Shown piece after piece: positions 7,287-61,903 of a stretch of DNA of 64,000 nucleotides. The notes below the pieces were generated by a model that had not been told where the DNA came from, searched no databases, and was given only the letters and a program-made list of their open reading frames with translations. Positions within the stretch are counted from its first letter, which is position 1. Every line of letters begins with the position of its first letter. The stretch lies in the sequence record NC_006268.1. The stretch is one strand, 5' to 3'. Both the position numbers and the translations under genes were made by a program.

Positions 7287-7334
7287 GGTAGTAAATTTAC
7301 AGAATTGTCATTACAATTCTACAAATTTATGGAA
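7287..7334. repeat. 48-bp palindromic element (box-TTGTCATTACAA-box)
   Basis: ggtagtaaatttacagaa ttgtcattacaa ttctacaaatttatggaa. Confidence 0.85.
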
Positions 7335-7467
7335 ACCCCTTTTTTCCCTTATGTTTTTATGACTATAATGTTATGTTAACATGTAATTTTACGTTTTTCA
7401 CTATGGAGCTTATGATAGAAAGTTTTATAAGCTTAAATGACCATACTAATAATCGGTGGGAAACATG
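7335..7467 (+). promoter_or_regulatory. Triplicated promoter cassette, copy 1 (BRE-TATA AGAAAGTTTTATAAGCTTAAA at 7417-7437, SD GGTGG)
   Basis: Collinear similarity with 9372-9503 and 14120-14251. Confidence 0.85.
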
Positions 7468-7917
7468 ATAGATATCGTTCCAGATGGTTTAAGTAAAGAA
7501 TCGTGGGAAAGTATAAGGGAAGAAGTCGCACAAGACCAAGAAGGCCTTCAATTTTTGCAAGGATTCGGTCTTGAAAATCCTGAAAATGCAACATTGGATG
7601 AGATAATTTATGTGCTATCAAAAATCTTAAGAACTTTAGAAGATAATACGAAAATCCAAGAATATCTTGTTCATCTTCAAGAAGTCTTGCAGATGTACGT
7701 GCATATCGAAAGCTGGAGAGACGTTCTTGCCTTAAATGTAGTTTACGTCGTTCCTGAATATGAGAATGAAAGAGCAAAAAAGGCCCACAGAATCCTGATG
7801 TTCTATTTCATGCAGCATCTTCAGCTCAAACTTAATCAAACTCCATTAACAATGAAGAGGGCGAGATTTGTAAGGAATACAATCAAAACCATACGCGAAA
7901 TGGTATTTAATATATAG
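7456..7917 (+). CDS. Hypothetical protein
   Basis: About 150 aa; likely start ATG 7465 downstream of the conserved promoter cassette and GGTGG SD. Confidence 0.75.
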   Translation: MGNMIDIVPDGLSKESWESIREEVAQDQEGLQFLQGFGLENPENATLDEIIYVLSKILRTLEDNTKIQEYLVHLQEVLQMYVHIESWRDVLALNVVYVVPEYENERAKKAHRILMFYFMQHLQLKLNQTPLTMKRARFVRNTIKTIREMVFNI

Positions 7918-7934
7918 GGAAAAATGATAAGGGT

Positions 7935-8798
7935 ATGAAGATCGTTTTAGGCCTGCCTGATGAAAGAGTGAAGTTATGGAAGTTAGGTGTACCGTTAATG
8001 ATTAATCAGTTGGTATGGGACAATGTAGAATGGGAAAATGAAACATGGGTAGATTCTGGTGGCTATCAAATAATGGTTAGAAAAATGCAGATTAGTGTAG
8101 ATGCCGTATTAGATAAATACAAGAGGCTTGATGCAGACTATTACATTAGTCTCGATATACCTGCAACACCTTGCGAAAAGCCTTCAGAGCTTAATTTCAA
8201 GCACTTTGAGTACTTATACACGAGACTAGATAAGAATATAATACCAGTCATTCACGCTTATGATGTTGAAAGTATTAAAAAGGCTATTGATTTCTACTCT
8301 CAATATACGGATTATATCGCCTTTGGTGGGATAGTTCCACCATCTCTTAATAAGGTAGCTAGCCAAAAGCTAGCAGTTGCAATGTACCGCCTTGTTAGGA
8401 AAGAATGGAAGGGTAAAATTCACGTTTTAGGTGCTGGTTCTCCTTTCATGAGAAAGGTTTTTTATGATGCTGATAGTGTTGACACATCAACTTATAGAGT
8501 AAAGGCAATACATGGTATGGTGTTATTGCCTGGAAAAGGAGAAAGATATGTTGGAGAGAGAAAAATAAGTTGGGGGGCTAGACGAATTAGTGAAGATGAA
8601 CTTGAATCGCTAAAGGCTTTTCTAGAGAAGACTCACTACCCATTTCCTATAAGGGTTGATAATTGGATAGATAGATCACTTGTTAACGCATGGGTTTTGT
8701 TACACAGTGAGTATGAGGAAGATAATCCTCTTATCAGATATGCACACAACATAACAGACCCAGAGGCTGAGATAAATGAGTTATGTAGAAAGCTGTGA
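7935..8798 (+). CDS. tRNA-guanine transglycosylase-fold protein, DpdA-like (probable DNA 7-deazaguanine inserting enzyme)
   Basis: TGT motifs DSGGYQ, SLDIP, PVIH, FGG, HVLGAG, DSVDTSTY. No CxCxxC Zn site and no PUA domain. Confidence 0.85.
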   Translation: MKIVLGLPDERVKLWKLGVPLMINQLVWDNVEWENETWVDSGGYQIMVRKMQISVDAVLDKYKRLDADYYISLDIPATPCEKPSELNFKHFEYLYTRLDKNIIPVIHAYDVESIKKAIDFYSQYTDYIAFGGIVPPSLNKVASQKLAVAMYRLVRKEWKGKIHVLGAGSPFMRKVFYDADSVDTSTYRVKAIHGMVLLPGKGERYVGERKISWGARRISEDELESLKAFLEKTHYPFPIRVDNWIDRSLVNAWVLLHSEYEEDNPLIRYAHNITDPEAEINELCRKL

Positions 8799-9339
8799 AC
8801 ACTTAGAGAAATATCTTGGCTCAAATAATGAACCAATAATAAAAAAGCCTGGCTTTGACCCATTCCAACACTCTGTCGTAAGGAAATGGCATGAGTACTT
8901 TCTCAATAACTGGTATTCCAAAAAAGAAAAAGAAATAGCGCTTTTACTGCCTTGCACATCAGTTAAGCCTTATAATAGGTCAGCTACTCATAAATTAGCA
9001 TACTCGTTATTGAGGAAATATAAACTTGAGGATAAGGTTCAGGTTTACTCTGTCTCTGAGCCGATGTTGTTAGTCCCTAGAGAATTAGAGAACTGTTACC
9101 CTTTCAATTCTTATGATTATCCCCCTTCTTTGATGACTGAAGAAGAAAAACAAGAGTTTATCAGACTACTTTCCATTGCCTTATCTCACATTCACAAGAT
9201 TCATAAAAGAATAGTGGCAGTTTTGCCTAAGCATCATTACAAGATAGTTTATGAGGCTTCTAAAAACATCCCAATCGAACTTTATCCTTATGGCAAATTA
9301 GCTTTTAAAACGATAGCAAATGTTATAATGAAGATATGA
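8776..9339 (+). CDS. Archaeosine synthase ArcS-like (DUF5591) protein
   Basis: Exact ArcS motif PC-x3-KPY-x2-S-x2-H (PCTSVKPYNRSATH) plus SEPMLLVPRELE; overlaps the TGT-fold gene by 23 nt. Confidence 0.85.
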   Translation: MSYVESCEHLEKYLGSNNEPIIKKPGFDPFQHSVVRKWHEYFLNNWYSKKEKEIALLLPCTSVKPYNRSATHKLAYSLLRKYKLEDKVQVYSVSEPMLLVPRELENCYPFNSYDYPPSLMTEEEKQEFIRLLSIALSHIHKIHKRIVAVLPKHHYKIVYEASKNIPIELYPYGKLAFKTIANVIMKI

Positions 9340-9348
9340 ACAACTATA

Positions 9349-9371
9349 GACAATTCACCAATTTTATAGAA
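9349..9371. repeat. Right half of the palindromic element
   Basis: gacaa ttcaccaattttatagaa, 10 nt after the ArcS-like stop. Confidence 0.7.
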
Positions 9372-9503
9372 GCCCCTTTTTCCCCTTGTGTCTTTTGTTA
9401 CTACCGTTTATATTTTCACGTAATTTTACGTATTTGACTATGAAGCTCATGGTAGAAAGTTTTATAAGCTTAAAGTGTCACAGTGATAATCGGTGGGAAA
9501 ATG
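9372..9503 (+). promoter_or_regulatory. Triplicated promoter cassette, copy 2 (BRE-TATA at 9454-9474)
   Basis: Drives the multi-RHH array; identical 21-bp core. Confidence 0.85.
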
Positions 9504-9821
9504 GCAGAAAACGAAACCATAAAACTTGTAACTTTCAGATGCGAAGATAGTCTGTTTTTAAAGCTTGAGGAAGAGGCTAAAAAAGCTAACACCACTAAAA
9601 CGGCAATTATAAAGGCTGCAGTGACACGGCTTTTACAGCACAGTATTGATGAGATAAGGGAGTTAAACAAAAGAACTCCGACCTATTCGGGCAAACGCGT
9701 AATCACAATAATGCTTCCTGAGAGTCTTAACACACAACTAAATGCTATTGCAGAAAAAATAAGTACCAACAAGAGTGACTTGATAAGGACTGCGATAGTA
9801 GCTTATTTCAAGATAGCATAA
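9483..9821 (+). CDS. Tandem ribbon-helix-helix protein (2 RHH modules)
   Basis: LVTFRCEDSLFLKLEEEAKKANTTKTAIIKAAV and VITIMLPESLNTQLNAIAEKISTNKSDLIRTAI; likely start ATG 9501. Confidence 0.85.
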   Translation: MIIGGKMAENETIKLVTFRCEDSLFLKLEEEAKKANTTKTAIIKAAVTRLLQHSIDEIRELNKRTPTYSGKRVITIMLPESLNTQLNAIAEKISTNKSDLIRTAIVAYFKIA

Positions 9822-9824
9822 GAG

Positions 9825-10919
9825 GTGGCAAAGATGGCATATTTACGCTTTCCAATGCGTATCTCTTTACTTAATAAAGTAAATGAAGAAGCTGCCCGCT
9901 TAAATGTAAAACGAACACTTTTGCTGAGAGCTGCAATTCACGCATTTATCGAAAACCCGCCAGAGACTATACAACCATTACCAACTCCAATCGGCGGATT
10001 TGGGCGAAAAGAATCAATAAAAGTTTTCTTAACATTGCCAAAAGACACTTTAGAAAAAATTCGTTCTTACGCTGCTGCAAGAGGACTATCAATAAGAAAT
10101 GTAGCAGAGAAGGCAGTAGCTGATTTTCTTAACTTGTCTGATGAACAGAAACTAATTTATATAAATAAGGAGATGGAAAGACTTGCAGAGAAGAGAAAGG
10201 GAAAAATAGACGAAGAGTCTACACTACAATTGCTAGAGCCCGAGGCTTCAAAAGATCCTTCTCTACTGGTTCCAACAAGTTTCAAATGTGTAGATGACTT
10301 ACATAAGCTACTTGCAAAAGAGGCATGTGAAAGGGGAACAACTGCAAGTGAGCTCGTGAGAAGAGCTGTTGAAGAATTTTTGAAAAAATATGGCGATAAC
10401 CTTGAGGAAATCAAAAAGCTATATGAGGTTGCTAAAGACCTGTATTATATGGAGGTTGAGGACAAAACTTGTACTTTAAAAATACCAGTGTATATGACAG
10501 TACAATTAGCAAAAATAGCTAATAAGATGAATGTACCTAAGTCTGCATTAATTCGTCTTGCGATCGTGAAATATCTGAACCTGAGTGACACAAAGCCACA
10601 AAAACACACAAAGCCACAAAAACACATAATCTTCAAATGTGCGGCTAGCCTTGTTTCAATGTTAGAAGAAAAGTCTAAAAAAGCTAACACCGCAAAAGCC
10701 GCAATTGTAAGGGAGGCAGTGAAACAACTTTTACAGCATAGTGCTGATGAGATAAGGGAGTTAAGCAGAAGAAATCCGGCTTGTTCAGCCGACTATCTAG
10801 TTTCCGTAATGCTTCCTGAGAGCCTTAATACTCAGCTAGATATTATTGCAGAAAAAGTAAGGACCACTAAGAACGATCTGATGAGGACTGCATTAGCAGT
10901 TTATTTTAGGCTAGTGTGA
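9825..10919 (+). CDS. Multi-RHH DNA-binding protein (6 RHH modules)
   Basis: Six strand-helix-helix repeats, e.g. PTSFKCVDDLHKLLAKEACERGTTASELVRRAVEEFL; likely start ATG 9834. Confidence 0.85.
   Translation: MAKMAYLRFPMRISLLNKVNEEAARLNVKRTLLLRAAIHAFIENPPETIQPLPTPIGGFGRKESIKVFLTLPKDTLEKIRSYAAARGLSIRNVAEKAVADFLNLSDEQKLIYINKEMERLAEKRKGKIDEESTLQLLEPEASKDPSLLVPTSFKCVDDLHKLLAKEACERGTTASELVRRAVEEFLKKYGDNLEEIKKLYEVAKDLYYMEVEDKTCTLKIPVYMTVQLAKIANKMNVPKSALIRLAIVKYLNLSDTKPQKHTKPQKHIIFKCAASLVSMLEEKSKKANTAKAAIVREAVKQLLQHSADEIRELSRRNPACSADYLVSVMLPESLNTQLDIIAEKVRTTKNDLMRTALAVYFRLV
10588..10623 (+). repeat. Perfect 18-bp tandem duplication in an RHH inter-module linker
   Basis: acacaaagccacaaaaac x2 (TKPQKH twice). 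Confidence 0.9.
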
Positions 10920-10931
10920 GAGGTAACGAAA

Positions 10932-11993
10932 ATGGCGTATTTACACTTATATCTACATAAATCTTTATTAAAGAAAGTAAAGAAAGAAGCATCACGTTTA
11001 AATGTAAAACGAAAACTTTTGATGAGTGCTGCAATTCAGGCATTTGTCGAAAATCCGCCAGAAACCATAAATCTACCGCCAGACTTGAATAACGGATTTG
11101 AACTAACAATTGGCGTTACCTTAGAACTGCCTACCGATGTTGTAGAAAAGATTTATTCTTACGCTATGTCAAAAGGTCTTTCGGCAAAAAAAGTAGCGGA
11201 GATAGCGATAACTACTTTTCTTAGCCTTTCTGATGAACAGAAAATGATCTATATAGATAAGGAGATAAAAAGACTTGAAGAGAAGAGAAAGAGAAAACTA
11301 AGCGAAGAGCGCAAGTTTCAATTTCTGGAAAGTATTGCTTCAAAAGATCCTTCTCGATCAGTTCGAATAAGTTTCAATTGTGTAGATGACTTACATAAAC
11401 TACTTGTAAAAGAGGCACATGTAAGAGGAACAACAGCGAGTGAACTTGTAAGAAGGGCTATTGAAGAATTTTTACAAAACTACTATAAGGGCAAGATAAA
11501 AATAAGAAAGCTGTATGAGGCTACTAAAGACTCGCATTATAGCAAAGCTGGGGGCAAAGTATATGACCTAAAAGTACCTACATATATGCTATTACATTTA
11601 ATGGTAATAGCTGATAATGTGAAGTTGTCTGTGGCTATGCTTATTCGTCTTGCCATTATGAGATATCTAAAGCTGGTTGACATAGAGCCACTAAAACAAG
11701 TAAGCTTCTCATGTGCGGCTAGTCTTATTTTAATGTTAGAGGAGGAGGTTAAAAAAACTAACACCGCAAGAGATGCAATTATAAAGGAGGCAGTGAAACA
11801 ACTTTTACAGCATAGTGTCGATGAGATAAGGGAGTTAAGTAGAGGAACTCCTCCCTATTCAAGCGGCTATGAAGTTTCCGTAAAGCTTCCTGAGAGCCTT
11901 ATCACACAACTAGATGCTATTGCAGAAAAAATAAGGACTAGTAGAAGCAACCTCATAAGAACTGCTTTAGCAGTTTATTTTAGGTTGGTATAA
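10932..11993 (+). CDS. Multi-RHH DNA-binding protein (6 RHH modules), paralog of 9825-10919
   Basis: Collinear similarity to the preceding ORF across all six modules. Confidence 0.85.
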   Translation: MAYLHLYLHKSLLKKVKKEASRLNVKRKLLMSAAIQAFVENPPETINLPPDLNNGFELTIGVTLELPTDVVEKIYSYAMSKGLSAKKVAEIAITTFLSLSDEQKMIYIDKEIKRLEEKRKRKLSEERKFQFLESIASKDPSRSVRISFNCVDDLHKLLVKEAHVRGTTASELVRRAIEEFLQNYYKGKIKIRKLYEATKDSHYSKAGGKVYDLKVPTYMLLHLMVIADNVKLSVAMLIRLAIMRYLKLVDIEPLKQVSFSCAASLILMLEEEVKKTNTARDAIIKEAVKQLLQHSVDEIRELSRGTPPYSSGYEVSVKLPESLITQLDAIAEKIRTSRSNLIRTALAVYFRLV

Positions 11994-11995
11994 GG

Positions 11996-12817
11996 GTGGT
12001 AAAGATGGCATATTTATGCTTTTCAATGCGCAACTCTCTACTTAACAAGGTAAATGAAGAAGCTACCCGCTTAAATGTAAAACGAACACTTTTAATGAAA
12101 GCTGCAATTCAAGCGTTTATTGAAAACCCGCCACAAACCATAAAACCGTTACCAAATGCAATTGGTGGCTTTGGGCGAAAAGAGACAGCAAAAGTTTGTT
12201 TAGCATTACCAAAAGATATCGTAGAAAAGATTTATTCTTATGCTATGTCAAAAGGCCTACCGGCGAGAAAAGTAGCGGAGAAGACAATAGCTGATTTTCT
12301 TAACTTGACTGATAAACAAAAACTAATTTATATAAATAATGAAATAAAAAGAGTTATAGAGAATAGGAAAAGAAAACTAGATAAAGAGCATTCGCTTCAA
12401 TTACTGGAAAATATTGCTTCAAAAGAACCTTATCGGCTAGTTCCAATAAGTTTTAAATGTGTAGATGATCTACATAAACTACTTGCAAAAGAGGCACGTG
12501 AAAGAGGAATAACGGTAAGTGAGCTTGTAAGAAGGGCTATTGATGATCTTTTGCAGAAATATGGTAATAACTTTGAGAAAATCAAAAAGCTGTATGAGGC
12601 TGCTAAACATCTGTATTATATCGAAGTTTCGGCTAAGGATTGTTCCTTAAAAGTGCCTGCATATATGCTATTACAGCTAACTAAAATAGCTGATAAGGTG
12701 AAGTTGCCTAGGACTATACTCATTCGCCTTGCAATTGTGAGATATCTGAACTTGGTTGACGTACATCAAGAGGTTATACAAAGTGTTAGCAGCGCAAACA
12801 TAACACTAGCAGCGTGA
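11996..12817 (+). CDS. Multi-RHH DNA-binding protein (4 RHH modules)
   Basis: Paralog of modules 1-4 of 9825-10919; likely start ATG 12005. Confidence 0.85.
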   Translation: MVKMAYLCFSMRNSLLNKVNEEATRLNVKRTLLMKAAIQAFIENPPQTIKPLPNAIGGFGRKETAKVCLALPKDIVEKIYSYAMSKGLPARKVAEKTIADFLNLTDKQKLIYINNEIKRVIENRKRKLDKEHSLQLLENIASKEPYRLVPISFKCVDDLHKLLAKEARERGITVSELVRRAIDDLLQKYGNNFEKIKKLYEAAKHLYYIEVSAKDCSLKVPAYMLLQLTKIADKVKLPRTILIRLAIVRYLNLVDVHQEVIQSVSSANITLAA

Positions 12818-12822
12818 TGTAA

Positions 12823-14067
12823 ATGAAGTCTCTTGAGTTCATTATTCCTAATGCCTTGTTCGATAAAATAAAAGAAGAAGCAGAACGACTTAATGTGACC
12901 GACAAGCTTTTGATTAAGGCAGCTATTATTACGTTTGCCGAAAACCCTTCAGACGCTATAAAACCACTATCATATAATTATAGCAAAAAAGACTTAACGA
13001 GAATTTACTTATCAGTACCAAAAGATATTATTGAAAAGATTCGTCTTTACTCCAGTTCAAAAGGATTTTCAATTAGGAGAATAGTTTGGAGTATGGTAGA
13101 TGATTTCCTTACTCTAGATGATGAGAAGAAAAAGTTCTATATAGACAAAGTAAAAAGAAGATTATCCAGGTTTAGAGATGATCAAAATCGTCTAACAAAA
13201 CTACAAGAGGCTATAGCTTACGAAAATTTTAATGCGCCAATTTCAGCGAGTTTTAAATGTAATCCTCAGTTATACAAACTAATTGAGGATGAGGTAATAA
13301 AAAAACGCACAACAATAAGTGATCTTGTAAGACAGGCTATTGAAGAGTTTCTGAAAAAGTATGGTAATAACTACGAGGAAATCAAAAAACTACATGAGAC
13401 GGCTAATCAATTATTTCCTGAAAAAGGTCCTTGGAAAGGGCGCGCTATAAAGTTGCCTGCGTATATGTTGCTTCAATTAACAAAGATTTCGGAGCAGACG
13501 TCAGTCCCCAGAAGCGCTATTATTCGCCTTGCAATTATGAAACACATGAATTTGTTAAATAAAAGCACCATAGAACAGCAGAAGGTTACAAGAAATGAAG
13601 TATTAAACGATCCGCCAAATGACCCACCATCCAATGATCCCCCACAACAAAATAATAAAGACGAACTTGAGCAAGTAATACGTTTTGTTAATGTATCACT
13701 GCCAGACCCACTTTATAATTTATTAAAGAAATATGTAATGCTTAAGTACAATATTGATGATGAAAGACAGATTAAGCTTGAAGTTAGTAAAATTGTTGCA
13801 AAAGTATTGATACAATGGGCAAGGAGACGCTTCTTTAAGAGGCCTGATATTGAAACTTATGTGATATGGCAAAAGATTTTAGAAGAGCTAAAGACGAGCC
13901 TTTATCCTAGCCTGAGCAGAGGAACAGTGGTGAAGAAGCAGGATATTCAAGATGCAATGAAGGAAATAAAAGATGTTAAAAATATAACAGAGTTATTTGA
14001 AAAATTTAAGAGGCGTGGCTATCTAAAGGAAATCGATAAAGACAACGTTAAAATTCTACTCTTGTAA
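12823..14067 (+). CDS. Multi-RHH protein (4 modules) with NDPP linker and an additional C-terminal domain (possible RHH plus winged helix)
   Basis: Modules 1-4 are paralogous to its neighbours, followed by an NDPPNDPPSNDPP linker. The C-terminus ELFEKFKRRGYLKEIDKDNVKILLL resembles a wHTH wing. Confidence 0.8.
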   Translation: MKSLEFIIPNALFDKIKEEAERLNVTDKLLIKAAIITFAENPSDAIKPLSYNYSKKDLTRIYLSVPKDIIEKIRLYSSSKGFSIRRIVWSMVDDFLTLDDEKKKFYIDKVKRRLSRFRDDQNRLTKLQEAIAYENFNAPISASFKCNPQLYKLIEDEVIKKRTTISDLVRQAIEEFLKKYGNNYEEIKKLHETANQLFPEKGPWKGRAIKLPAYMLLQLTKISEQTSVPRSAIIRLAIMKHMNLLNKSTIEQQKVTRNEVLNDPPNDPPSNDPPQQNNKDELEQVIRFVNVSLPDPLYNLLKKYVMLKYNIDDERQIKLEVSKIVAKVLIQWARRRFFKRPDIETYVIWQKILEELKTSLYPSLSRGTVVKKQDIQDAMKEIKDVKNITELFEKFKRRGYLKEIDKDNVKILLL

Positions 14068-14071
14068 GTTT

Positions 14072-14119
14072 TTCAGTAAAATTACAGAATTGTCATGTTA
14101 GTTCTACAAATTTGTGGAA
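14072..14119. repeat. 48-bp palindromic element
   Basis: ttcagtaaaattacagaa ttgtcatgttag ttctacaaatttgtggaa. Confidence 0.85.
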
Positions 14120-14251
14120 ATCCCTTTTTCCCCTTGTGTTTTTGTGACTATCGTGTTAAATTAACATGTGACTTTACGTATTTGACTATGGAGTTTATGA
14201 GAGAAAGTTTTATAAGCTTAAATGAACACAATAATAATCGGTGAAAAAATG
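14120..14251 (+). promoter_or_regulatory. Triplicated promoter cassette, copy 3 (BRE-TATA at 14202-14222)
   Basis: Identical 21-bp core. Confidence 0.85.
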
Positions 14252-15049
14252 TTTGAGATCCAATCCGAAAAAACACAACTCCACTTAAAGGCAAAAGAAA
14301 AGACTTTAGAAGACTTAGTATATTACACGTTAAGAAACAGCGTTACGTTATATAAGAAAGGCATATTGCCTTTCGCATTGTACAACTACAAAATAGATAG
14401 AATAAAGAAAGATATATCAAAGATTAATCAAACAACATATGCGATAACCTTAAGCGTAAGATTATATAACACTGCCAGCAAAGAAAAACTAAAAATAATG
14501 TTCACTTTCATTTTTGAAATAAATGCCGATCATAGCAGCGAGTACTTGTTTGACCCAGATGAGGCTGAAGATAGATTGTTGATAATAACAATGCCAGGCT
14601 TATCTCCACTAGTTTATGACTTCGCTGACTTTATCGAAAGGGCTGACTTTACCTACGATCCTCTAGCTTATGTTGAATCAAATAAAGAAGTTAAGGAGAA
14701 TATGATAAATGTAGCAATGAAGAAAGTAAAAAGATACACTATACCTATAGGCAATGAGGCCTTTATCGAGGCTGACGTGTTTTATGCAGAGAGGAAAATA
14801 GACTTAGCTGCTGCCAGTATGTTAGGAAGTAATAATTGGACACTTATAGAGAAAAAAGTTAATTTGGCTGATTATAATGATGATATACAGGCTGTGTTAA
14901 AGGCTTATGCTGAAGAGTTGAATGAAACGCTTCACGACCTGATACGAAACGGAGAAACTAAAATATTTGCGATAAAATATAAAGATAAATTGACTATGCG
15001 CCTTATAGCACCAGTTTCAAAAAAGGAAAACTACCTGTTTGCCACATAG
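14222..15049 (+). CDS. Hypothetical protein
   Basis: Long ORF; likely start ATG 14249 behind the conserved promoter cassette and GGTGA SD. Confidence 0.8.
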   Translation: MNTIIIGEKMFEIQSEKTQLHLKAKEKTLEDLVYYTLRNSVTLYKKGILPFALYNYKIDRIKKDISKINQTTYAITLSVRLYNTASKEKLKIMFTFIFEINADHSSEYLFDPDEAEDRLLIITMPGLSPLVYDFADFIERADFTYDPLAYVESNKEVKENMINVAMKKVKRYTIPIGNEAFIEADVFYAERKIDLAAASMLGSNNWTLIEKKVNLADYNDDIQAVLKAYAEELNETLHDLIRNGETKIFAIKYKDKLTMRLIAPVSKKENYLFAT

Positions 15050-16040
15050 GTGGCCCATCATGCCTTACTTAACGTTTAGAATCCCACGCGGTCTAGTTGA
15101 AACAATGAAAACACTTCAAGAGAAGCGACAAGAAACTCAAGACCTAATAGTCACTAGGGCCTTGGAGAAATTTTTTGAAAAATACAAAAATGAAAGCTTC
15201 AGAATTGCGCATCGAGAAGTAAAGAAATTAGAGCCAAAGCTTACTGCTGATTCGCCACCACTTGAGGATCTAGTTACTGTTTCATTGTCAGATGATATGG
15301 TAAAGAGGCTAAATGAATACATAGAAAAGAATAAAGTGAGCTCTAGGGATTTGGTTGTTTCTGCCGCGCTCACTGATTACCTTTATGATCTTACTATAAG
15401 AAGAAAGGAGAAAGCAGAAATTTCTTTTCCCGTCAGTAGCGAGATTTACAGAAAGCTCAAAAATATATTACAATTTACCTCAAAGGGTATGAAGGATATT
15501 GTGTCAGATGCCATAAAATGGTTTTTAGATAATTATGGGGACTATGACTTTGCTCATATAATTAAGAATAGGATAGAAAATGAGGATGAAGTGTACAAGG
15601 GAGATTCGGTCATTACGACAATGATACCGAGTCGCCTTAAGAGACGTCTTTATAATTATGCACATAAGAACGGAGTTCCAATGGTTATCGCATTTCGTGT
15701 TGCGATAATTCTGTACTTAAAAAAGGTTGAGGAAGGTAAGATAAAGCTTAGTGAGGCTAAGAATGAGGAGGTAAAGCAAGATACGCAAAAGGAAAAACAC
15801 ATAAACGAAATTGTTGAATCACTAGATAAATTGCAAAAAGAGCTTAAGGAACTAAAGGATAAAAAAGAAAGAAATGATTCACACGTTCGCCTAGTCAATA
15901 CTAAACTAGAGGTCATAAAATTAGGAATTAAGAGTGGCGCCGAGCCCGATGAGATTATGAATGTAGTAAAGACGCTTGACAAGATGGTGGATGAGGCAAA
16001 GGAAAAGAAGGAAACGTTAATAAAAGATAATAATTCGTGA
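15039..16040 (+). CDS. Multi-RHH protein (4 modules) with C-terminal coiled coil
   Basis: e.g. YLTFRIPRGLVETMKTLQEKRQETQDLIVTRALEKFF and VITTMIPSRLKRRLYNYAHKNGVPMVIAFRVAI; likely start ATG 15060. Confidence 0.8.
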   Translation: MPHRWPIMPYLTFRIPRGLVETMKTLQEKRQETQDLIVTRALEKFFEKYKNESFRIAHREVKKLEPKLTADSPPLEDLVTVSLSDDMVKRLNEYIEKNKVSSRDLVVSAALTDYLYDLTIRRKEKAEISFPVSSEIYRKLKNILQFTSKGMKDIVSDAIKWFLDNYGDYDFAHIIKNRIENEDEVYKGDSVITTMIPSRLKRRLYNYAHKNGVPMVIAFRVAIILYLKKVEEGKIKLSEAKNEEVKQDTQKEKHINEIVESLDKLQKELKELKDKKERNDSHVRLVNTKLEVIKLGIKSGAEPDEIMNVVKTLDKMVDEAKEKKETLIKDNNS

Positions 16041-19644: not shown

Positions 19645-19692
19645 TTCTACCAATTTACAGAATTGTCATGACAATTCTGTAATTTTGGTGAA
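19645..19692. repeat. 48-bp palindromic element
   Basis: ttctaccaatttacagaa ttgtcatgacaa ttctgtaattttggtgaa, 5 nt after the dcd stop. Confidence 0.9.
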
Positions 19693-27725: not shown

Positions 27726-28226
27726 TTATACGCCTTGCGGGAGATAACCTAATGCCATTAACATGTATAGAATTTCTGCTACTGAAAATACGCCTATTAA
27801 GAAGTAATCAAATGCCATAATAACTGGTGCTACGATTAAACCTTGAACAACTAATGGAACCCAATCTGCAAAGAGGAAAAGCGCGTTAGTATAGACATAC
27901 GTAATATATGCTACTATAAACACAGTTTGTGCGTAGGTTTGTGTTGAGGAGGATAGGTTTGAAAGTAATGATATTCCAGACATTGTACCTAGAAGTGCTG
28001 CACCATTTACTACAGCGCCAAAAAATGGATTATGTACTAACCCAGTTAGGAATGTGATAAGACTTAGTCCAGAAATGTAAGATAGTAACTGAGATGCTTG
28101 TCCGGAAAAGTAGTTTGGAATCGCTGCCGTAATTGCATCAACTAGGAGGTTTGCAACAAAAGCCCCCATTAATATTCCATATGCTGCGTTAAATGTTGTT
28201 TGTAAGAAATTTGTTAGGAATCCCAT
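27726..28226 (-). CDS. Membrane protein (about 4 TM helices)
   Basis: 166 aa, almost entirely hydrophobic. Confidence 0.8.
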   Translation of the reverse strand: MGFLTNFLQTTFNAAYGILMGAFVANLLVDAITAAIPNYFSGQASQLLSYISGLSLITFLTGLVHNPFFGAVVNGAALLGTMSGISLLSNLSSSTQTYAQTVFIVAYITYVYTNALFLFADWVPLVVQGLIVAPVIMAFDYFLIGVFSVAEILYMLMALGYLPQGV

Positions 28227-28237
28227 CTTCTATCACC

Positions 28238-30571: not shown

Positions 30572-30657
30572 TTCGGTAAATTTACCAAATTCTTACTTGT
30601 TGAACATATTTTGGTAAATTTGCTGAATTATCATGACAATTCGGTAGATTTGAAGAA
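30572..30657. repeat. Single box (30572-30589) plus full 48-bp element (30610-30657)
   Basis: ttcggtaaatttaccaaa; tttggtaaatttgctgaa ttatcatgacaa ttcggtagatttgaagaa. Confidence 0.85.
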
Positions 30658-37256: not shown

Positions 37257-37298
37257 CGACCTAGTTTATGCGGTAAAAAAGTAAAGTTTATTAAGAGA

Positions 37299-42328: not shown

Positions 42329-42360
42329 CTCGTATATATTTTTAAACTACTTATATTTAA

Positions 42361-42482
42361 CCTTGTCACCCCACAGTTAGGAGGGGATGTTGAGCCTCAA
42401 CCTTACGGTTCACTGTGACAACTTGCCACTCTACGTAAGGGTCATGGGCCCCCTTCGAGCCCCAAGGCATGAGGCTCACATC
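42361..42482. ncRNA. Candidate structured non-coding RNA (three-way junction)
   Basis: 57% GC (68/120 counted over 42361-42480) in AT-rich intergenic DNA; nested stems 42386-42399/42470-42482 and 42400-42407/42434-42442 plus a hairpin at 42446-42463. Confidence 0.5.
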
Positions 42483-42564
42483 TAAGTGTTATCAATATAG
42501 ACATAGTTGTAAAAATTAATAAACTTTACTTTTTCACATCGTAAGCTAGGTATGAGTGAAACCC

Positions 42565-42612
42565 TTCTCCAAAACTGGAGAATTGTAATTACAGTTCTGC
42601 AAATTTGGTAAA
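42565..42612. repeat. 48-bp palindromic element
   Basis: ttctccaaaactggagaa ttgtaattacag ttctgcaaatttggtaaa. Confidence 0.8.
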
Positions 42613-47620: not shown

Positions 47621-47971
47621 TTATTGTGAAGAAGTTTGAGAAGATTTTTCAATTACTTCTTTGTAAAAAATTTCTAGCCACTTGTCTATATAAAGTGCTA
47701 TAGCTGTTCTTATGATCACAGCAGGCGTAACGTTTCTCCTCTTTGCTAGTTCTTCTATTGCTTCGACCAGATTACGATCTAATTTCATTACCTTTATATG
47801 CCTTTTTCCTGGCTTAATGTAATACTTATCAATTGGGTTTTGTAAATATTCGACTAATGCCTCATTTATTAGCTGTGCTTGATCTTTTTTGAGAAAGTTT
47901 GACACTTTTTGAAGACTGTCAAATAGGTAGTTGTCCAGAGGGAATCTAACTTTAATCTTCTGCCCTGCCAT
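47621..47971 (-). CDS. Tandem RHH protein (2 modules)
   Basis: IKVRFPLDNYLFDSLQKVSNFLKKDQAQLINEAL and IKVMKLDRNLVEAIEELAKRRNVTPAVIIRTAI. Confidence 0.85.
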   Translation of the reverse strand: MAGQKIKVRFPLDNYLFDSLQKVSNFLKKDQAQLINEALVEYLQNPIDKYYIKPGKRHIKVMKLDRNLVEAIEELAKRRNVTPAVIIRTAIALYIDKWLEIFYKEVIEKSSQTSSQ

Positions 47972-48023: not shown

Positions 48024-48575
48024 CTACGAATTTGCGATACGGGCTAAGTAATCTTCCGCCTCCTTCGTTTGAACATAAGTCAGAATGTGGCGCAAGCTCT
48101 TATGGCCAGTTATTTTTGCAACTACTTCAGCTGGTAATCCATCTTTTATTGCTTTTGTTATAAAAGCATAACGGAAAGAGTGCGTATTTACGCCATAGCG
48201 CCTTTTGCAAAACATCTTCACTGCTGCGATCATTTTCCTTTCACTTTTTGTAAGTATGATGGAATAGTACTTTTTGTAAGTGATTATTTTGGGGATGATG
48301 ATTTTTCTTTCATTCCCGCCTTTTTCAGCCTTTAAAATGATTGTTCTTTCTTTGCCACCAACTTCTACAAATTGGTAGAAAGCCTTAACTGCTTCGCCTA
48401 TTCGTGTACCATTTAAAAGCTGTGTAAGTAAAATTGCAACGTAAATCTCTTTATCAAAATCCTCAGTGGAGTTTTGTGAGAATTGCTTATAGTCTTTTTC
48501 TAAGGTTTTTCTCATCTTGTCAAAGTCAACTCCCTTGTCCCACTTGAATATTGTCTTCCCTTCTTCTATTGCCAC
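48024..48575 (-). CDS. Tyrosine recombinase/integrase (catalytic domain only, 183 aa)
   Basis: Catalytic set R (GTRIGE), K (AEKGG), HxxR (HSFR), H (TGH), Y (LTYV). Confidence 0.92.
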   Translation of the reverse strand: MAIEEGKTIFKWDKGVDFDKMRKTLEKDYKQFSQNSTEDFDKEIYVAILLTQLLNGTRIGEAVKAFYQFVEVGGKERTIILKAEKGGNERKIIIPKIITYKKYYSIILTKSERKMIAAVKMFCKRRYGVNTHSFRYAFITKAIKDGLPAEVVAKITGHKSLRHILTYVQTKEAEDYLARIANS

Positions 48576-48610: not shown

Positions 48611-48628
48611 TTCTGTAAAATTGTAGAA
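48611..48628. repeat. Single 18-bp box upstream of the recombinase
   Basis: ttctgtaaaattgtagaa. Confidence 0.75.
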
Positions 48629-50156: not shown

Positions 50157-50624
50157 GTGATGCGAAACGTTTTTAAACAAAAGATAGAAAAAATAAAAAT
50201 GATGACAACGATCAATGCATTTCAACTGGATGAGCTGAAGACAAAGCTATACTATGAGGCCTTTGCTGCTGGAATGCAATCAATAATAAATGAATTTTAT
50301 AAAAAAGGTATCTCACCTATTCAAATTAGCGATGAATATGTTCTTGATGATGACTACTTTAATCAACAAGTCACATTTGACGATAATGGTACATTCAAGA
50401 TAATAAGTACAATAAGGCATTACAGCCTAAATGGCGAAAAAGAAATCTTAATTGATTTTATCTACACACAAGGTGAACAAAAGGCAACAATGCAAATAAT
50501 TGCGAGAACTAATGATAACATATTTGTTGGACCAGAGATTGATTATCAAAAATACTTAGAGATCTATTACGATGTGGTAGATAAGCTGGCCTCTGAACTT
50601 GATTCTGAGCTTGATAAGGAATAA
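50157..50624 (+). CDS. Hypothetical acidic protein
   Basis: ORF; true start likely one of the downstream ATGs near 50199. Confidence 0.75.
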   Translation: MMRNVFKQKIEKIKMMTTINAFQLDELKTKLYYEAFAAGMQSIINEFYKKGISPIQISDEYVLDDDYFNQQVTFDDNGTFKIISTIRHYSLNGEKEILIDFIYTQGEQKATMQIIARTNDNIFVGPEIDYQKYLEIYYDVVDKLASELDSELDKE

Positions 50625-50760
50625 TTTTTTCGAACTTTTGAAATCACTTAACGCTTTATTTTTCACGTAATAAGTTCGAAGTTCCTGTATATAGCAAAAG
50701 TTCGAAATTCGAAAGTGAAAGCAGATGAGTGAAAACCTTTGGTAAATTTACTGAAGTCAT
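50622..50760 (+). repeat. 139-bp intergenic direct repeat, copy 2
   Basis: 6 mismatches versus 37095-37233; contains a 12-bp inverted repeat 50629-50640/50695-50706. Confidence 0.95.
50738..50760. repeat. Left half of the palindromic element
   Basis: tttggtaaatttactgaa gtcat, abutting the 3' end of the alpha-class methylase. Confidence 0.75.
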
Positions 50761-50767
50761 AGCAAAT

Positions 50768-52006
50768 CTATCTAACCTTTTTCAACACCACTAGGTGCTC
50801 AGTTTTGATCCTACTGTCTTCCAGCCCAGTGGCCGGATTTACATCTGCTTCGAACATTACGCGAGAAACTATTTTATCAACATAGGTAACTTCATGCCGC
50901 CAGCCGAACTCTCTCAAGTGTTCAGTTACTATATCATCTATTGGAATAGGTAAATTCCGTATCTTAGCTGGGCCAACAAAGATGAACATGTAATCTACCA
51001 CTCTTTCACCTAACGTAGCGAATGCCTGCAAAATTGCATTAAAGTAATTGTCATAAAGTGCCCTAAGATGGCTTTCTGTTATTTTTTCTCTGAGGGTGTA
51101 GTACGTTTCTGAAAAAATGTTTGTACTTTTTACTTGTCTATAAGGAATCTCTTTTTTACTTAGCGATTGTATGTACTTCTCGTCGTAACCTAGCCAAAAC
51201 AGCTCAAGCTTCGTAGACCTAATATACTCTTGTGCTTGCAAGTAAGGTGGAGATGTGATAAGTGCATTAACTTCTTTATCTAGTCTGGTTTCCAACGTGT
51301 CAATACCGGCTTTTAACTCATAATCTACCGCTTTAGGCTTAAGATGATTGTACTCTTCTATTTTCCTAATAAGCGTAAGTATTTCATTCTTTAACATGTT
51401 ATAAAATTTGGCTTTCCAATTTGTTTTAAGAAGTGTTTCTACTTTCTGTTTAGAGTATTTTGACTTAAATAGCTTATGAACCTTTTCGTCACTATACGAA
51501 AAGTATCGCGTAACCTTGAGTAGCGGTATTAATAGCAAATATTTTTTCTTGTCTGTAATTGAGTGGGCGAACCCCCATGCTTTCGAAAGAAGAGGGAGAA
51601 ACTCCTCCGGGAACCAATAATTTAGGTTAGACCATTTGGGGAGGAATTCCTCTCGAGAGTTCATCAAATCTTTCATTATCTTTTCAACATCCGCTTCTGC
51701 CCTTGTCATGATAGCTGTATTATGTGTGACATTTATTATCGGGTTTAACTCCCATAACACATAACTATGCCCATACACTCTTGATACGACACCAACTGTA
51801 CCATAACCAGCAAAAGGGTCAAACACCTTCATGCCTGGCTTGCAGTAAGTCTTCAGTATATAAGCAACAACCTGCGGAATGAATTTAGCGGGATATCGAT
51901 AAATAGCAAATGTTCCGTATGTAGTTGTTGGAATTTCCGGGATCATGTTCCTAAAAACTACGGGAACCCTTTGAGAACCTTCAGACGATACCGTCATAAT
52001 TATCAT
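50768..52006 (-). CDS. Amino-methyltransferase, alpha class, probable N4-cytosine DNA methylase
   Basis: YRYPAKFIPQ, motif I FDPFAGYGT near the N-terminus, motif IV ITSPPY in the C-terminal half. Confidence 0.88.
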   Translation of the reverse strand: MIIMTVSSEGSQRVPVVFRNMIPEIPTTTYGTFAIYRYPAKFIPQVVAYILKTYCKPGMKVFDPFAGYGTVGVVSRVYGHSYVLWELNPIINVTHNTAIMTRAEADVEKIMKDLMNSREEFLPKWSNLNYWFPEEFLPLLSKAWGFAHSITDKKKYLLLIPLLKVTRYFSYSDEKVHKLFKSKYSKQKVETLLKTNWKAKFYNMLKNEILTLIRKIEEYNHLKPKAVDYELKAGIDTLETRLDKEVNALITSPPYLQAQEYIRSTKLELFWLGYDEKYIQSLSKKEIPYRQVKSTNIFSETYYTLREKITESHLRALYDNYFNAILQAFATLGERVVDYMFIFVGPAKIRNLPIPIDDIVTEHLREFGWRHEVTYVDKIVSRVMFEADVNPATGLEDSRIKTEHLVVLKKVR

Positions 52007-56389: not shown

Positions 56390-56407
56390 TTCTCCAAATT
56401 GGTAGAA
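56390..56407. repeat. Single 18-bp box
   Basis: ttctccaaattggtagaa, 5 nt from the beta-class methylase stop. Confidence 0.75.
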
Positions 56408-56412: not shown

Positions 56413-57306
56413 TCATTTTTGCGTGACTGTCCTTTGCCTTTTAACTTTTTCTTGAAGCCAGCTTCTTAGCCGTTTAGCATCATCCCTTATAATTATCTCG
56501 AAATTCGATGAATCAGAATTAAACAGTTTAGCGTGATCTATTCCTAACTTCTTTTTCACCACGTCAAGAAGTTCCAGGTCAATTTCATAGCCAACTGCTT
56601 TTCTTCTTAATTCAACAGCTACCTTTAATGTTGTTGCAGAACCCATGAATGGGTCCAAAACAGTTTCACCAACATAAGAAAATAATTTTATCAATCTGTA
56701 AGGAATCTCTTCTGGGAAGGCCGCTATTCCTTCTTCAATTCTACCTTTAACTGGTAGAACGTTTGTAATCTCCCATACAGAAAGATACCACTTTTCTCTA
56801 TTAAATTCCTGTATGTCAATTCTTGACGATTCTAATTCTGCCTTGTTTTTAGGGTACTTATATTCGCCTTTTTGCATAATCAAAATCTCCTCGTATATAT
56901 TGTCTGGATAGAAGTACATTGGGTATGGATGCTGTAACTGCACTCCACTTCGTCTACTTATCCTAACATAACCCTCTGGCTTTTTCCAGATAATCCTATC
57001 GCGATAAGTGAAACCTTCCTCCATCATTATCCTAAGAATGTCCGCAGTTACTGGGTACAATTTCCCATTAATTCTAACATCTTGCGTCACGAAACAGGCT
57101 ATCCTACCTTCTGCCAAAACCCTATATAGTTCCCTAGCCACATCTCTTATCAATCCAAGAAATTCATCGTAATCCTTAAATAAATCTGGATAATCAAAGG
57201 GGGCGTTAAAGTATGGAGGTGAAGTAACCACTAAGTGAACTGAACCATCCGAAATTTCTTTCATGTTTCTACTGTCACCAAAAACTATCAGATTTCCTTG
57301 AGGCAT
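56413..57306 (-). CDS. Amino-methyltransferase, beta class (N4-C/N6-A DNA methylase)
   Basis: Motif IV VTSPPY at the N-terminus; AAFPEEIPYRLIK and motif I LDPFMGSATT at the C-terminus. Confidence 0.92.
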   Translation of the reverse strand: MPQGNLIVFGDSRNMKEISDGSVHLVVTSPPYFNAPFDYPDLFKDYDEFLGLIRDVARELYRVLAEGRIACFVTQDVRINGKLYPVTADILRIMMEEGFTYRDRIIWKKPEGYVRISRRSGVQLQHPYPMYFYPDNIYEEILIMQKGEYKYPKNKAELESSRIDIQEFNREKWYLSVWEITNVLPVKGRIEEGIAAFPEEIPYRLIKLFSYVGETVLDPFMGSATTLKVAVELRRKAVGYEIDLELLDVVKKKLGIDHAKLFNSDSSNFEIIIRDDAKRLRSWLQEKVKRQRTVTQK

Positions 57307-57370: not shown

Positions 57371-57418
57371 TTCTGTAAATTGGTAGAATTGTCATGACAA
57401 TTCTACCAATTTACAGAA
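57371..57418. repeat. Perfect 48-bp palindrome (type copy of the element)
   Basis: ttctgtaaattggtagaattgtcatgacaattctaccaatttacagaa equals its own reverse complement. Confidence 0.97.
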
Positions 57419-57959: not shown

Positions 57960-58044
57960 CTTCTGTAAATTTGTAGAAGTCAAGTCTTTGTTTATATCTC
58001 TGTTGAAATAATAAAAGTGAGTTGCGTTCTGTAAATTTGTAGAA
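57955..58044. repeat. Two single 18-bp boxes (57961-57978, 58027-58044)
   Basis: ttctgtaaatttgtagaa twice; the first is extended by cttgac/gtcaag into a 30-bp inverted repeat. Confidence 0.85.
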
Positions 58045-58814
58045 AAAGCTTGTTAGTTAGGCGGTTTACTGTAAGAGGTGTGATAGTTTAGTATCTGAAA
58101 GTAAGCTGTTTAACTTTCGCCCCCCACACCCCCCCAAAAAAAGAGGGGTGGTGTAAGTAAGAGGGGCCTCATTAGCGGCAGCAATTAGTGCTTAGCAGCA
58201 GCTTAGCGGCCTAGCAGCAGCTGCTTATATTAAATAATTAGCTTAATATAAGACTCTTATTACATTAGCTAAGAACGCCCTTAACTCCCTCAGATTATTT
58301 CATATGACTTTTTGACGCATATAATTAAACGCCTGATCTTTTCATATCTCTTTCTATTTTTATCTTCTTAGTATTAACACTTCAAAGGTCGTTTTCTTTC
58401 ACTCTTAATTCAACACTTCTTACTACACACTTTTATACACTACAGAATTATCAATTAGATGTACCTTCTTTTCTTTTGTTTAATTCAGTATCTTTCACTT
58501 TCACAATATTTAGATGACATACAGAGAAGGTGGTGAGAAGTCTCATTCAGCATGAGAAAAATTGCGATTTCATATACCCCCCATACCCCCTTAACTTATT
58601 TCATACCCCTTTTATGCAAAGTTGTAATATTAATACAAGCTACTCTCTTTTTACTTGTGTATAGTGAAGAGTAACATATTATCACTAAACAAAAATTTTC
58701 TTTACTCCTCTTATCTTTTACATTTTTCCCTTAAACTTTTAGGTTGGTAGAATATTTATTACAGTCGTGAGAAAAATTATTTATAAAATTAGATGTTTAT
58801 TTATCTCACGTTAA
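57960..58814. other. Largest non-coding region (about 855 bp) with boxes, C/G-run hairpins and TTAGCRGC repeats
   Basis: No ORF of 60 aa or more in the track; see finding. Confidence 0.7.
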
Positions 58815-60576: not shown

Positions 60577-60630
60577 GCTATTCTTTATTTTGGCTACAGA
60601 ATTTATAAAAGTAATATCGAATAGTAATAT

Positions 60631-60948
60631 ATGTCTTTACCATATATCCCTAGAGCACGTATTGCCACAGAAAAGTCGAAAAATGAAGAGGATGAAGAGC
60701 AAAAAGCTGCAGAAAGCAAAAAAGATGAGCAAAAAGTAGATTGCACGCAAGTAGTTGCACAGTATGTTACACTTTTAAATGATTTGCTAAGTGACTTGCA
60801 AGAGCTTCTAAATCTTTTAGCAGATCGCTCTCTTAAAGCAAAGCCAAACTTCAAATGCCTCGATTACGATTTTTACCCTATTAACCCCGTGTTAACTCGT
60901 TACATTGTTAAGGGAATAAAAGAAGAATGTAGAAAAAGTTTAAAATGA
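60631..60948 (+). CDS. Hypothetical protein
   Basis: 105-aa ORF with TATA-like sequence upstream. Confidence 0.65.
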   Translation: MSLPYIPRARIATEKSKNEEDEEQKAAESKKDEQKVDCTQVVAQYVTLLNDLLSDLQELLNLLADRSLKAKPNFKCLDYDFYPINPVLTRYIVKGIKEECRKSLK

Positions 60949-61149
60949 AGTTTGGAAAAGTTCAGAAATCCTCTTTTTCCTACCGTCATAATAGTAAATA
61001 ATGCCATCATCGCCGAGATTTTCAATTTTCTTAACCTCAAAACTGTAAAGCGTGACAGTGTTCAAATCAAGTTCATTCTCACTTTCTGAGTTAGTTATCT
61101 TTAGGAACTCACCTTCCTTCTCTATCAAATATTTACCTATCTTTATCAT
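60940..61149 (-). CDS. Hypothetical protein
   Basis: 69 aa; ATGA coupling to 61146-61772, GAGGTGA SD. Confidence 0.7.
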   Translation of the reverse strand: MIKIGKYLIEKEGEFLKITNSESENELDLNTVTLYSFEVKKIENLGDDGIIYYYDGRKKRISELFQTSF

Positions 61150-61772
61150 CTTCTCACCTCTTCAATCTGAAGAAGTTTATCTACCTCATCAGAGATCTCA
61201 TCTCTTTTACGAAATACTTCTATTGCCTGTTCTAGCAATTCTAATCTTTGTGAAACATTCTGCCTTGCCCCTTCCATTATATTAATTAATTCTTTTGTAG
61301 TATCGTTAATCCTTATAAGCAATTCGTACATCTTTTCCATTGTATTTTTCTGATCTTCTATCTTATTCATTGCTTCTTTAATTTTATTTTCGTTAATGTG
61401 TGTAGAACTAGCAGCATTTTTTACCATTCTCATTTCCGCATCTAAAATTACTTGTACTATTTTTGTTGTTGTTTCTATAAATTCCAGTTCCATCCTATCC
61501 ACCTGTTTTAGCATTTCTATTATCTCATTTATTTTGTTGATTATCTCAGCTTCTGGTACCTTTTCTTCATTCAACCTTTTACGGAGGTCTGTTATACTAT
61601 CAAAAATTTTTACGCATGTGTCATCTGCTTCAGTGCTAAGTCTATCGGCTTTTTTTGATAACCTATTAAGCTCTTTAAATTCGTTATCACTCAAAACATC
61701 CTTTAAATTTGCGAAATCCGTGTTATCTTCTTCATTATATACTTTATTTTCTTCAAGATCTTTTTCTTTCAT
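61146..61772 (-). CDS. Coiled-coil protein
   Basis: 208 aa, heptad-rich E/K/I/L composition. Confidence 0.8.
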   Translation of the reverse strand: MKEKDLEENKVYNEEDNTDFANLKDVLSDNEFKELNRLSKKADRLSTEADDTCVKIFDSITDLRKRLNEEKVPEAEIINKINEIIEMLKQVDRMELEFIETTTKIVQVILDAEMRMVKNAASSTHINENKIKEAMNKIEDQKNTMEKMYELLIRINDTTKELINIMEGARQNVSQRLELLEQAIEVFRKRDEISDEVDKLLQIEEVRR

Positions 61773-61864
61773 ATTAATCTATTTCTTTATGTGTCATTTT
61801 ATAAATTTTTATCAAAGACCTCTCTTTGCTTCTTTGCCAACTCATCGTTTTTAGATTTCCTCTT

Positions 61865-61903
61865 TTTACAGAATTGTCATGACAATTCAGCAAATTTGGA
61901 GAA
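61865..61903. repeat. Palindromic element with degenerate left box
   Basis: tttacagaa ttgtcatgacaa ttcagcaaatttggagaa. Confidence 0.85.

Follow-up and report, generated by a model that had tools for sequence, protein, structure and literature searches.

The stretch analysed here, called the window throughout, is a 64,000-nucleotide portion (bases 11295–75294 of AJ783769.1; record NC_006268.1) of the genome of Sulfolobus virus STSV1, and the feature under study is a palindromic 18-bp box that recurs along it, mostly between genes and often in pairs that form a 48-bp composite element. Among the genes of the window are a tyrosine recombinase (open reading frame (ORF) 56), a ParB_N-like protein (ORF50) and a family of ribbon-helix-helix (RHH) proteins; no Rfam family or tRNA was found within its 64 kb. 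The other 11.3 kb of the genome was scanned too. Unless stated otherwise, positions are those of the window.

Number, form and placement of the boxes

An earlier sequence-only reading of the window had described a dispersed palindrome in about 14 copies, with the consensus TTCTRYMAATTKRYAGAA. The palindrome is real: this consensus has 14 matches with at most two mismatches, against 0.30 expected from dinucleotide-preserving shuffles, a degenerate box pattern (TTYNVYMRWWYKRBNRAA in IUPAC code) has 24 against 0.55 expected, and a position weight matrix (PWM) with a threshold of 15 bits has 25 against 0.23 in Markov-1 simulated windows. PWM scores are bimodal, with about 25 boxes at 15 bits or more and hardly any between 12 and 15. 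The copies are dispersed as described and more numerous, amounting to about 16 loci and 25–27 boxes in STSV1.

The box is two-fold symmetric and consists of two abutting half-sites of the form TT(C/t)-N-V-Y-A-A-A around a symmetric centre, AAATTT. Eight pairs of boxes are exactly 30 bp apart, start to start, and one pair is 28 bp apart. In paired boxes the spacer is TTGTCATGACAA or a near variant (the exact sequence occurs four times), and its TCATGA core is likewise symmetric. The 48-bp composite is two boxes around a 12-bp palindromic core, that is, four half-sites and a 12-bp palindrome. The copies are as follows.

7287–7334: full element with a degenerate left outer box, in the thyX/ORF17 gap about 100 bp upstream of the ORF17 TATA box; followed by CCCCTTTTTTCCC
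9349–9371: half element (partial core GACAA and box 9354–9371), 14 bp past the ORF19 stop codon and about 100 bp upstream of the ORF20 TATA box
14072–14119: full element, 4 bp past the ORF24 stop codon and upstream of ORF25; kept in STSV2, STSV3, STSV4 and contigs from metagenome-assembled genomes (MAGs)
19645–19692: full element, 5 bp past the dUTPase stop codon and 48 bp upstream of the ORF34 TATA box
30572–30589: single box in the divergent ORF37/ORF38 region, 32 bp from the ORF37 TATA box
30610–30657: full element, 13–14 bp upstream of the ORF38 TATA box
37211–37256: full element of 46 bp with a 10-bp core, between convergent ORF46 and ORF47 and within a 199-bp insertion found only in STSV1
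42565–42612: full element in the ORF53/ORF52 gap, adjoining an internally deleted IS605/orfB remnant
48363–48380: strong box in the ORF56 integrase coding sequence, encoding FYQFVE; kept in STSV2–4 with one synonymous change; 248 bp from the promoter box
48611–48628: single box about 8 bp upstream of the TATA box of the ORF56-ORF55 operon and 62 bp from that of ORF57
50738–50767: half element (box and degenerate core) between convergent ORF60 and ORF61, 12 bp past the ORF61 stop codon
55300–55347: full element in the wcaG/ORF64 gap, 12 bp upstream of the ORF64 TATA box
56390–56407: single box, 5 bp past the ORF66 stop codon and 38 bp upstream of the wcaG TATA box
57371–57418: perfect 48-bp palindrome (24/24) in the divergent ORF66/ORF67 promoter region
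57961–57978: box 1 bp past the ORF67 stop codon, its degenerate core overlapping that codon
58027–58044: box identical to the 57961 copy and 66 bp beyond it, in an 855-bp gene-free gap
61856–61903: full element with a degenerate left outer half, in the divergent ORF71/ORF72 region

Every position given in the sequence-only reading holds a copy, and the copy at 57371 is, as it had said, perfectly palindromic. Its layout needed adjusting at 37211, where the spacer is 10 bp, at 7287, where the left box is degenerate, and at the last copy, whose supposed start at 61865 is the middle of a degenerate left box.

Non-coding DNA makes up 9.9% of the window and holds 24 of the 25 boxes (15/16 loci; binomial p ~2e-23). 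The claim that all copies are intergenic holds apart from the strong box within ORF56, which had gone unlisted. Of the 35 gaps between genes that span 40 bp or more, 15 contain boxes (tandem 8/24, divergent 4/7, convergent 3/4). Across 7287–48611 the loci follow one another every ~5.3–6.8 kb, and at double that distance across ORF34; this spacing may simply reflect operon lengths.

The GenBank annotation, which includes TATA boxes, ribosome-binding sites and origin repeats, has nothing at the box sites, and a description of the element is absent from the literature that we searched by sequence string and keyword, a search whose scope did not take in the original STSV1 and STSV2 genome papers. 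To that extent, the element is undescribed.

Conservation and selection

STSV2 carries about 30 boxes, mostly at places orthologous to those of STSV1, and boxes are also present in the STSV3 and STSV4 contigs and in STSV-like contigs binned into unrelated MAGs. A BLAST search of the 48-mer against 50,697 phage records gave meaningful matches in STSV1–4 only. SMV1, which has the coat protein, large structural proteins, ATPase and integrase in common with STSV1, has no box above 14.1 bits by PWM, and this best site, below the 15-bit threshold, lies in coding sequence. Conservation in relatives, which the sequence-only reading had named as a check, was thus seen in STSV2, STSV3 and STSV4 and not in SMV1. 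Short fragments of more distant STSV-like genomes (L177/L178, L181/L182) have neither boxes nor an obvious substitute motif. The presence of boxes in STSV1–4 and their absence from SMV1 and the distant fragments indicate that the element is private to one clade of STSV-type viruses.

Wider scans gave nothing further. In IMG/VR the pattern identified STSV1 and STSV2, the remaining matches being without boxes; in metagenomes it hit at least 120 chance loci, with no boxes among the matches listed; and a search for the coat-protein locus returned only STSV1 itself. Across 185,579 genomes, a two-box pattern gave 11 chance bacterial matches and none in archaea, which is a weak negative because that pattern fits only one of the nine STSV1 elements and does not cover single boxes.

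A half-site profile built on 59 distinct boxes (118 half-sites) has invariant T1 and T2, a pyrimidine at every position 6 and strongly conserved A7–A9. When orthologous boxes of STSV1 and STSV2 were compared, 17 of 210 conserved positions differed (8%) versus 36 of 168 variable positions (21%), with flanks about 85% identical. The whole flavour of a half-site has often been swapped between orthologous boxes while the frame was kept (e.g. at 61886). On this comparison, specific box positions are under purifying selection.

The symmetry could in principle be that of a nucleic-acid structure, whether an RNA hairpin for terminating or stabilising upstream transcripts or a cruciform in the DNA, the latter also raised by the sequence-only reading. 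Many boxes start 1–14 bp past stop codons, three copies (all in three paralogous promoter modules described below) are followed by a C4-T5-6-C4 tract, and one copy is a perfect palindrome. However, the arms of the elements pair at only 14–24 of 24 positions, and over 25 aligned elements this pairing equals that of shuffles (79.5% complementary cells versus 79.3%; covariation score 0.184 versus 0.178). A three-hairpin alternative tried on the same elements likewise had no compensatory excess, and variable positions are weakly complementary (134 versus 119 ± 6.8, p = 0.02). Four loci have no gene upstream, being in divergent promoter regions, and direct reading of the sequence finds no T-tract after copies downstream of minus-strand genes. 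A selected hairpin, cruciform or REP-like stem (REP, repetitive extragenic palindromic) is not supported, given the shuffle-level pairing and the lack of compensatory excess, and action of the palindrome as a structure of any such kind is the least probable of the explanations that we weighed. As the arms do not covary, the symmetry is better understood as a recognition pattern than as a conserved stem, which favours a symmetric protein complex.

Promoter context

Annotated TATA boxes are never overlapped by a box, and boxes lie 8–103 bp upstream of about 14 of them. The distance is 8–14 bp for ORF56-55, ORF64 and ORF38, 32–62 bp for ORF37, wcaG, ORF34, ORF66, ORF67, ORF57 and ORF71, and about 90–100 bp for ORF17, ORF20, ORF25 and ORF72. 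Three of the distal cases share a repeated promoter module, with the order core-box-CCCCTTTTTCCCC-...-TATA. This module of about 130 nt (CCCCTTTTTCCCC, a conserved stretch and AAAGTTTTATAAGCTTAAA) stands before ORF17, ORF20 and ORF25 (7335–7463, 9372–9500 and 14120–14248), and related promoter copies of 55 nt stand before ORF11, ORF15 and ORF31.

ORF1–11 are predicted early genes (supplement of PMC11065993). In the 11 kb that contains them there are just two boxes, both weak: one at record position 186 (16.5 bits, the only box in the 11.3 kb outside the window) and one at window position 1520 (about 15 bits), unlisted in the sequence-only reading. The regulatory motif of PMC11065993 belongs to other promoters, namely those of ORF1, 2, 4, 6, 9, 11 and 72.

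On balance we lean, with modest confidence, towards the box being a dyad-symmetric operator for a DNA-binding protein of the STSV lineage, most likely a tandem RHH protein, that would occupy the 48-bp composite cooperatively. A protein-binding site, one of the functions put forward in the sequence-only reading, is the interpretation best supported by the dyad symmetry, the independent half-sites, the purifying selection, the 30-bp pairing, the closeness to promoters and the restriction to a single lineage. Each 9-bp half-site would be read independently, and paired boxes with the 12-bp core would form a composite on which several protein units bind cooperatively; with box centres 30 bp apart, or about three helical turns, these units would lie on the same face of the DNA. 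Occupancy upstream of about 14 transcription units, which lie outside what is predicted to be the early region, could co-ordinate their expression, whether by occlusion of the TATA box or the transcription factor B recognition element (BRE), by spreading from a distal high-affinity site or by looping. From these patterns we infer binding by a protein, its identity and the outcome and sign of regulation.

Several observations weigh against an operator role. At three loci (37211, 50738 and 57961/58027) the flanking genes are convergent and no promoter is annotated, the distance from box to TATA box varies widely and without helical phasing, and the position of many boxes within 1–14 bp of stop codons could hint at a role at 3′ ends. 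The three dyads of the element are 15 bp apart, versus the 7–11 bp typical of adjacent RHH dimers.

Other features recur close to the elements. A 43-nt TTCGAA-rich repeat (AAGTTCGAAGTTCCTGTATATAGCAAAAGTTCGAAATTCGAAA) lies just past the stop codons of thyX, ORF46 and ORF60 (7188–7230, in reverse orientation, 37145–37187 and 50672–50714), each time 24–57 bp from an element, and may be a second protein site or a 3′-end signal. The 855-bp gap at 57960–58814 opens with the two identical perfect boxes 66 bp apart and has no ORF longer than 44 aa and no Rfam match. Its arrangement is kept in STSV2/3, and it could hold an unannotated RNA or other cis element.

Candidate binding proteins

The sequence-only reading had named the recombinase, the ParB-domain protein and the RHH proteins as possible partners of the element. 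These genes are as follows.

9501–9821, plus strand: ORF20, 106 aa, two tandem RHH domains (Pfam/PHROG); candidate box binder
9834–14067, plus strand: ORF21–ORF24, paralogues with 3 to at least 5 RHH modules per chain (Pfam/PHROG)
38820–39806, minus strand: ORF50, ParB_N-like, with G79-x-x-R82-x-x-A85; rival candidate
47621–47971, minus strand: ORF55, tandem RHH, co-transcribed with the integrase (Pfam/PHROG); candidate box binder
48024–48575, minus strand: ORF56, 183-aa tyrosine recombinase (PF00589, E 5.8e-9); rival candidate

The RHH proteins are the best of the three candidates, the choice of binder being our reading of gene content and box position. Boxes lie upstream of both tandem-RHH genes, about 100 bp from the ORF20 TATA box and about 8 bp from that of the ORF56-ORF55 operon, and are kept there in STSV2–4; at the genes' own promoters they would mean autoregulation. 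The likeliest binders would be ORF20 and ORF55, perhaps with the multi-RHH paralogues ORF21–24, autoregulating through the boxes at their own promoters. ORF21 and ORF22 have at least five RHH modules in one polypeptide, and ORF23, ORF24 and ORF26 have three or more (9834–14067, 15060–16040); this multi-RHH family was found in STSV-like sequences only and is expanded further in STSV2. When an ORF20/ORF55 profile was compared with solved RHH proteins, one half matched EndoAI and CopG, and the other matched SSV-RH E73 (E 4e-4) and, weakly, SvtR; single-sequence searches of the PDB with ORF50, ORF55 and ORF20 gave no significant match. ORF62 is AbrB/MazE-like (Pfam/PHROG). SMV1 lacks counterparts of the RHH family, ORF50 and ORF62 and has an integrase 41% identical to ORF56. 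As the integrase is present in box-less SMV1, integrase and boxes do not co-occur.

We consider it unlikely that the boxes are loading sites for ORF50 resembling parS or KorB operators and functioning in genome segregation, in condensation or packaging, or in long-range silencing. ORF50 has a ParB_N match (Pfam E 1.8e-4; PHROG ParB-like E 4.5e-10), keeps the GxxRxxA motif and, like the boxes, is missing from SMV1. Plasmid RK2 (IncP) has 12 KorB operators, which are short, dispersed, intergenic palindromes at very different distances from promoters, and KorB is a ParB-family protein that is both regulator and partition factor; STSV1 likewise has a dozen-odd dispersed palindromes at variable promoter distances together with a ParB_N-like gene. 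Against such a role, the Pfam score of ORF50 (21.9 bits) falls below the gathering cut-off of 26.3, and a helix-turn-helix (HTH) domain was not demonstrable: the AlphaFold model, built with four near-identical sequences, has a predicted local distance difference test (pLDDT) score of 58, too poor to judge HTH or fold. There is no box near the ORF50 promoter, and no ParA partner was identified, the ATPases ORF51 and ORF69 having given weak Pfam hits with no examination aimed at ParA. The boxes are spread over the window, with a single weak one in the 11.3 kb next to the proposed origin. Moreover, a homologue 79% identical to ORF50 lies on an 11.7-kb contig that lacks boxes, including at the conserved ORF53/ORF52 position. 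The KorB operator is also a single 13–16-bp palindrome, unlike the 18-bp box with its 48-bp composite, and neither a ParA nor a KorA partner is seen in STSV1. The parS-like role suggested in the sequence-only reading is therefore weak.

Rearrangements at boxes

Box-bounded differences between genomes, traced with a collinear chain of STSV1 and STSV2 and with alignments of the junctions, bear on the third candidate, ORF56. STSV2 has an extra 164-bp segment bounded by two copies of the box at 30572. At the 55300 locus, STSV2 and STSV3/4 have a 352-bp segment with an extra gene, STSV2_63, bounded by a full and a half element; the STSV1 state looks like a deletion between the two cores. An STSV2 insert of 1544 bp that includes an IS605 orfB (IS, insertion sequence) separates the two boxes of the palindrome at 57371. 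STSV1 alone has a 199-bp module (37098–37296, ORF46/47), which is flanked by an AGACTAA direct repeat, is 93% identical to 50619–50769 in the ORF60/61 gap and has in addition a box and a tail resembling a promoter; this module seems to be intergenic DNA copied recently from that gap. Finally, a homologue of ORF67 (58% identity) is inverted with its promoter, relative to STSV1, in the MAG contigs L179 (3340–5000) and L180 (3271–3945), where the inverted cassette has a full element on one side and, on the other, a core-plus-box overlapping the stop codon of the homologue. Boxes bound about 3 of about 7 intergenic indels between STSV1 and STSV2, which is suggestive and not significant.

A role as core sites of the tyrosine recombinase ORF56, moving gene cassettes with integron- or shufflon-like modularity, would account for several of these facts. 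ORF56 belongs to the Phage_integrase family, one box abuts its promoter and another lies within its gene, each of the 164-bp, 352-bp and 1544-bp insertions has boxes, or a duplicated core plus box, at its ends, the element-bearing 199-bp module was copied to a new STSV1 site, and the inverted ORF67 cassette ends inside elements. In SSV-type viruses attP lies inside int, which the STSV1 recombinase gene, adjoining one site and containing another, recalls. Even so, site-specific recombination is quite unlikely in our view. The integrase is shared with SMV1, which lacks boxes; the box has no arm-overlap-arm layout and no asymmetric 6–8-bp overlap, its centre being symmetric; and 25 active sites without orientation would scramble the genome, whereas gene order is largely collinear in the four viruses. 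The indel count is not clearly above chance, and homologous recombination between repeats of 18–48 bp accounts for the same junctions. As short dispersed repeats are expected to recombine anyway, we keep site-specific recombination as a low-probability rival, and the endpoints in boxes are circumstantial support for the recombination role that the sequence-only reading had proposed. A more specific version, in which ORF56, perhaps guided by ORF55, swaps, deletes or inverts box-bounded promoter-gene cassettes between co-infecting genomes, is consistent with the indels bounded by boxes, with the copying of the 199-bp module and the inversion of the ORF67 cassette, and with the presence of a box in int, and is less probable again. 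On the operator reading, dispersed boxes could also act as recombination endpoints between or within genomes, which can be a side effect.

Bacterial REP sequences and bacterial interspersed mosaic elements (BIMEs) are short, extragenic, imperfect palindromes, often 3′ of genes and in inverted pairs, and are hotspots of IS insertion and rearrangement. The STSV1 elements share the extragenic location, the inverted units paired around a linker and the association with IS insertions and rearrangements, and could be selfish palindromes of the REP/BIME type or like miniature inverted-repeat transposable elements (MITEs), moved in trans by an enzyme of the IS200/IS605 type. At three places an IS605 orfB copy or remnant adjoins a box, and the element-bearing 199-bp module has its 7-bp flanking direct repeat. 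Such mobility is nevertheless very unlikely: the elements keep orthologous positions and a stable copy number in four viruses of a single lineage, hairpin covariation is not seen, and the moved unit was 199 bp of ordinary intergenic DNA and not a bare 48-bp unit. None of the 40 proteins scanned is a Y1 transposase, a REP-associated tyrosine transposase (RAYT) or an IS200-type TnpA, and the IS copies of STSV2 are orfB-only.

The IS605/orfB (TnpB) remnant of STSV1 (42360–42510) is internally deleted, keeping the 3′ end and the right end where STSV2 has a full orfB, and could still encode a guide (omega) RNA. Of the STSV2 orfB copies (11015–12298 and 28118–29368), the second adjoins boxes or promoter modules, as does the orfB copy at 2120–2182 of MAG contig L183.

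Comparison with archaeal viral operators

The closest parallels to an RHH operator set are those of SvtR (SIRV1), AvtR (AFV6) and F55 (SSV1). These regulators typically autoregulate and bind imperfect repeats, and SvtR and AvtR, both archaeal viral RHH proteins, bind imperfect inverted repeats and can act about 80 nt upstream of a TATA box (PMC5569661). Like the STSV1 boxes, their operators lie in intergenic DNA of the virus and consist of imperfect sub-sites, inverted or repeated; a high-affinity site about 80 nt upstream of the TATA box is possible, with cooperative occupancy by several units, and AvtR is a tandem RHH protein, as are ORF20 and ORF55 (PMC5569661). RHH operators are made up of at least two short inverted or tandem sub-sites, and each STSV1 box has two inverted 9-bp half-sites. 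The sequences differ, however, the operators ATnnTTCAAnAnnnnnAAAATG, ATnnTnnTAnnACnTT and ATAGATAG being unrelated to the STSV TTCTGTAAATTTACAGAA, and so does the scale: a handful of sites for SvtR, AvtR and F55 versus about 25 boxes spread over 16 loci in STSV1, where the composite has a fixed 48-bp form. The best-supported classification would place the boxes among the operators of a mobile element's global regulator, already a known class, in which the composite architecture appears unusual.

The control of the ~75 genes of large tailed spindle viruses of the Sulfolobales is almost unknown, and operators have been identified for only a few regulators from archaeal viruses. The conserved box, present at 16 loci, supplies a concrete cis-regulatory map together with a short list of candidates (ORF20, ORF55, ORF21–24, ORF50 and ORF56). 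The boxes also mark unit boundaries and recombination-prone points, which helps to explain the gain and loss of accessory genes. If single chains with several RHH modules do read the composite element, that mode of DNA recognition would be unusual.

Other features

Some annotated ORFs or gene starts overlap elements (STSV2 14258–14500, which is STSV2_14, and 65468–65521, as well as several small STSV3/4 ORFs); these are probably annotation artefacts, which the boxes would help to correct. ORF19 has a DUF5591 domain, a neighbouring product is named queuine tRNA-ribosyltransferase in RefSeq, and there are three DNA methyltransferases (together at 7998–9339, 1664–3766, 50768–52006 and 56413–57306), a combination that suggests an extensive DNA-modification repertoire. 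ORF54 (1549 aa; 43351–46453) contains four internal repeats of about 594 bp that are 73–87% identical.

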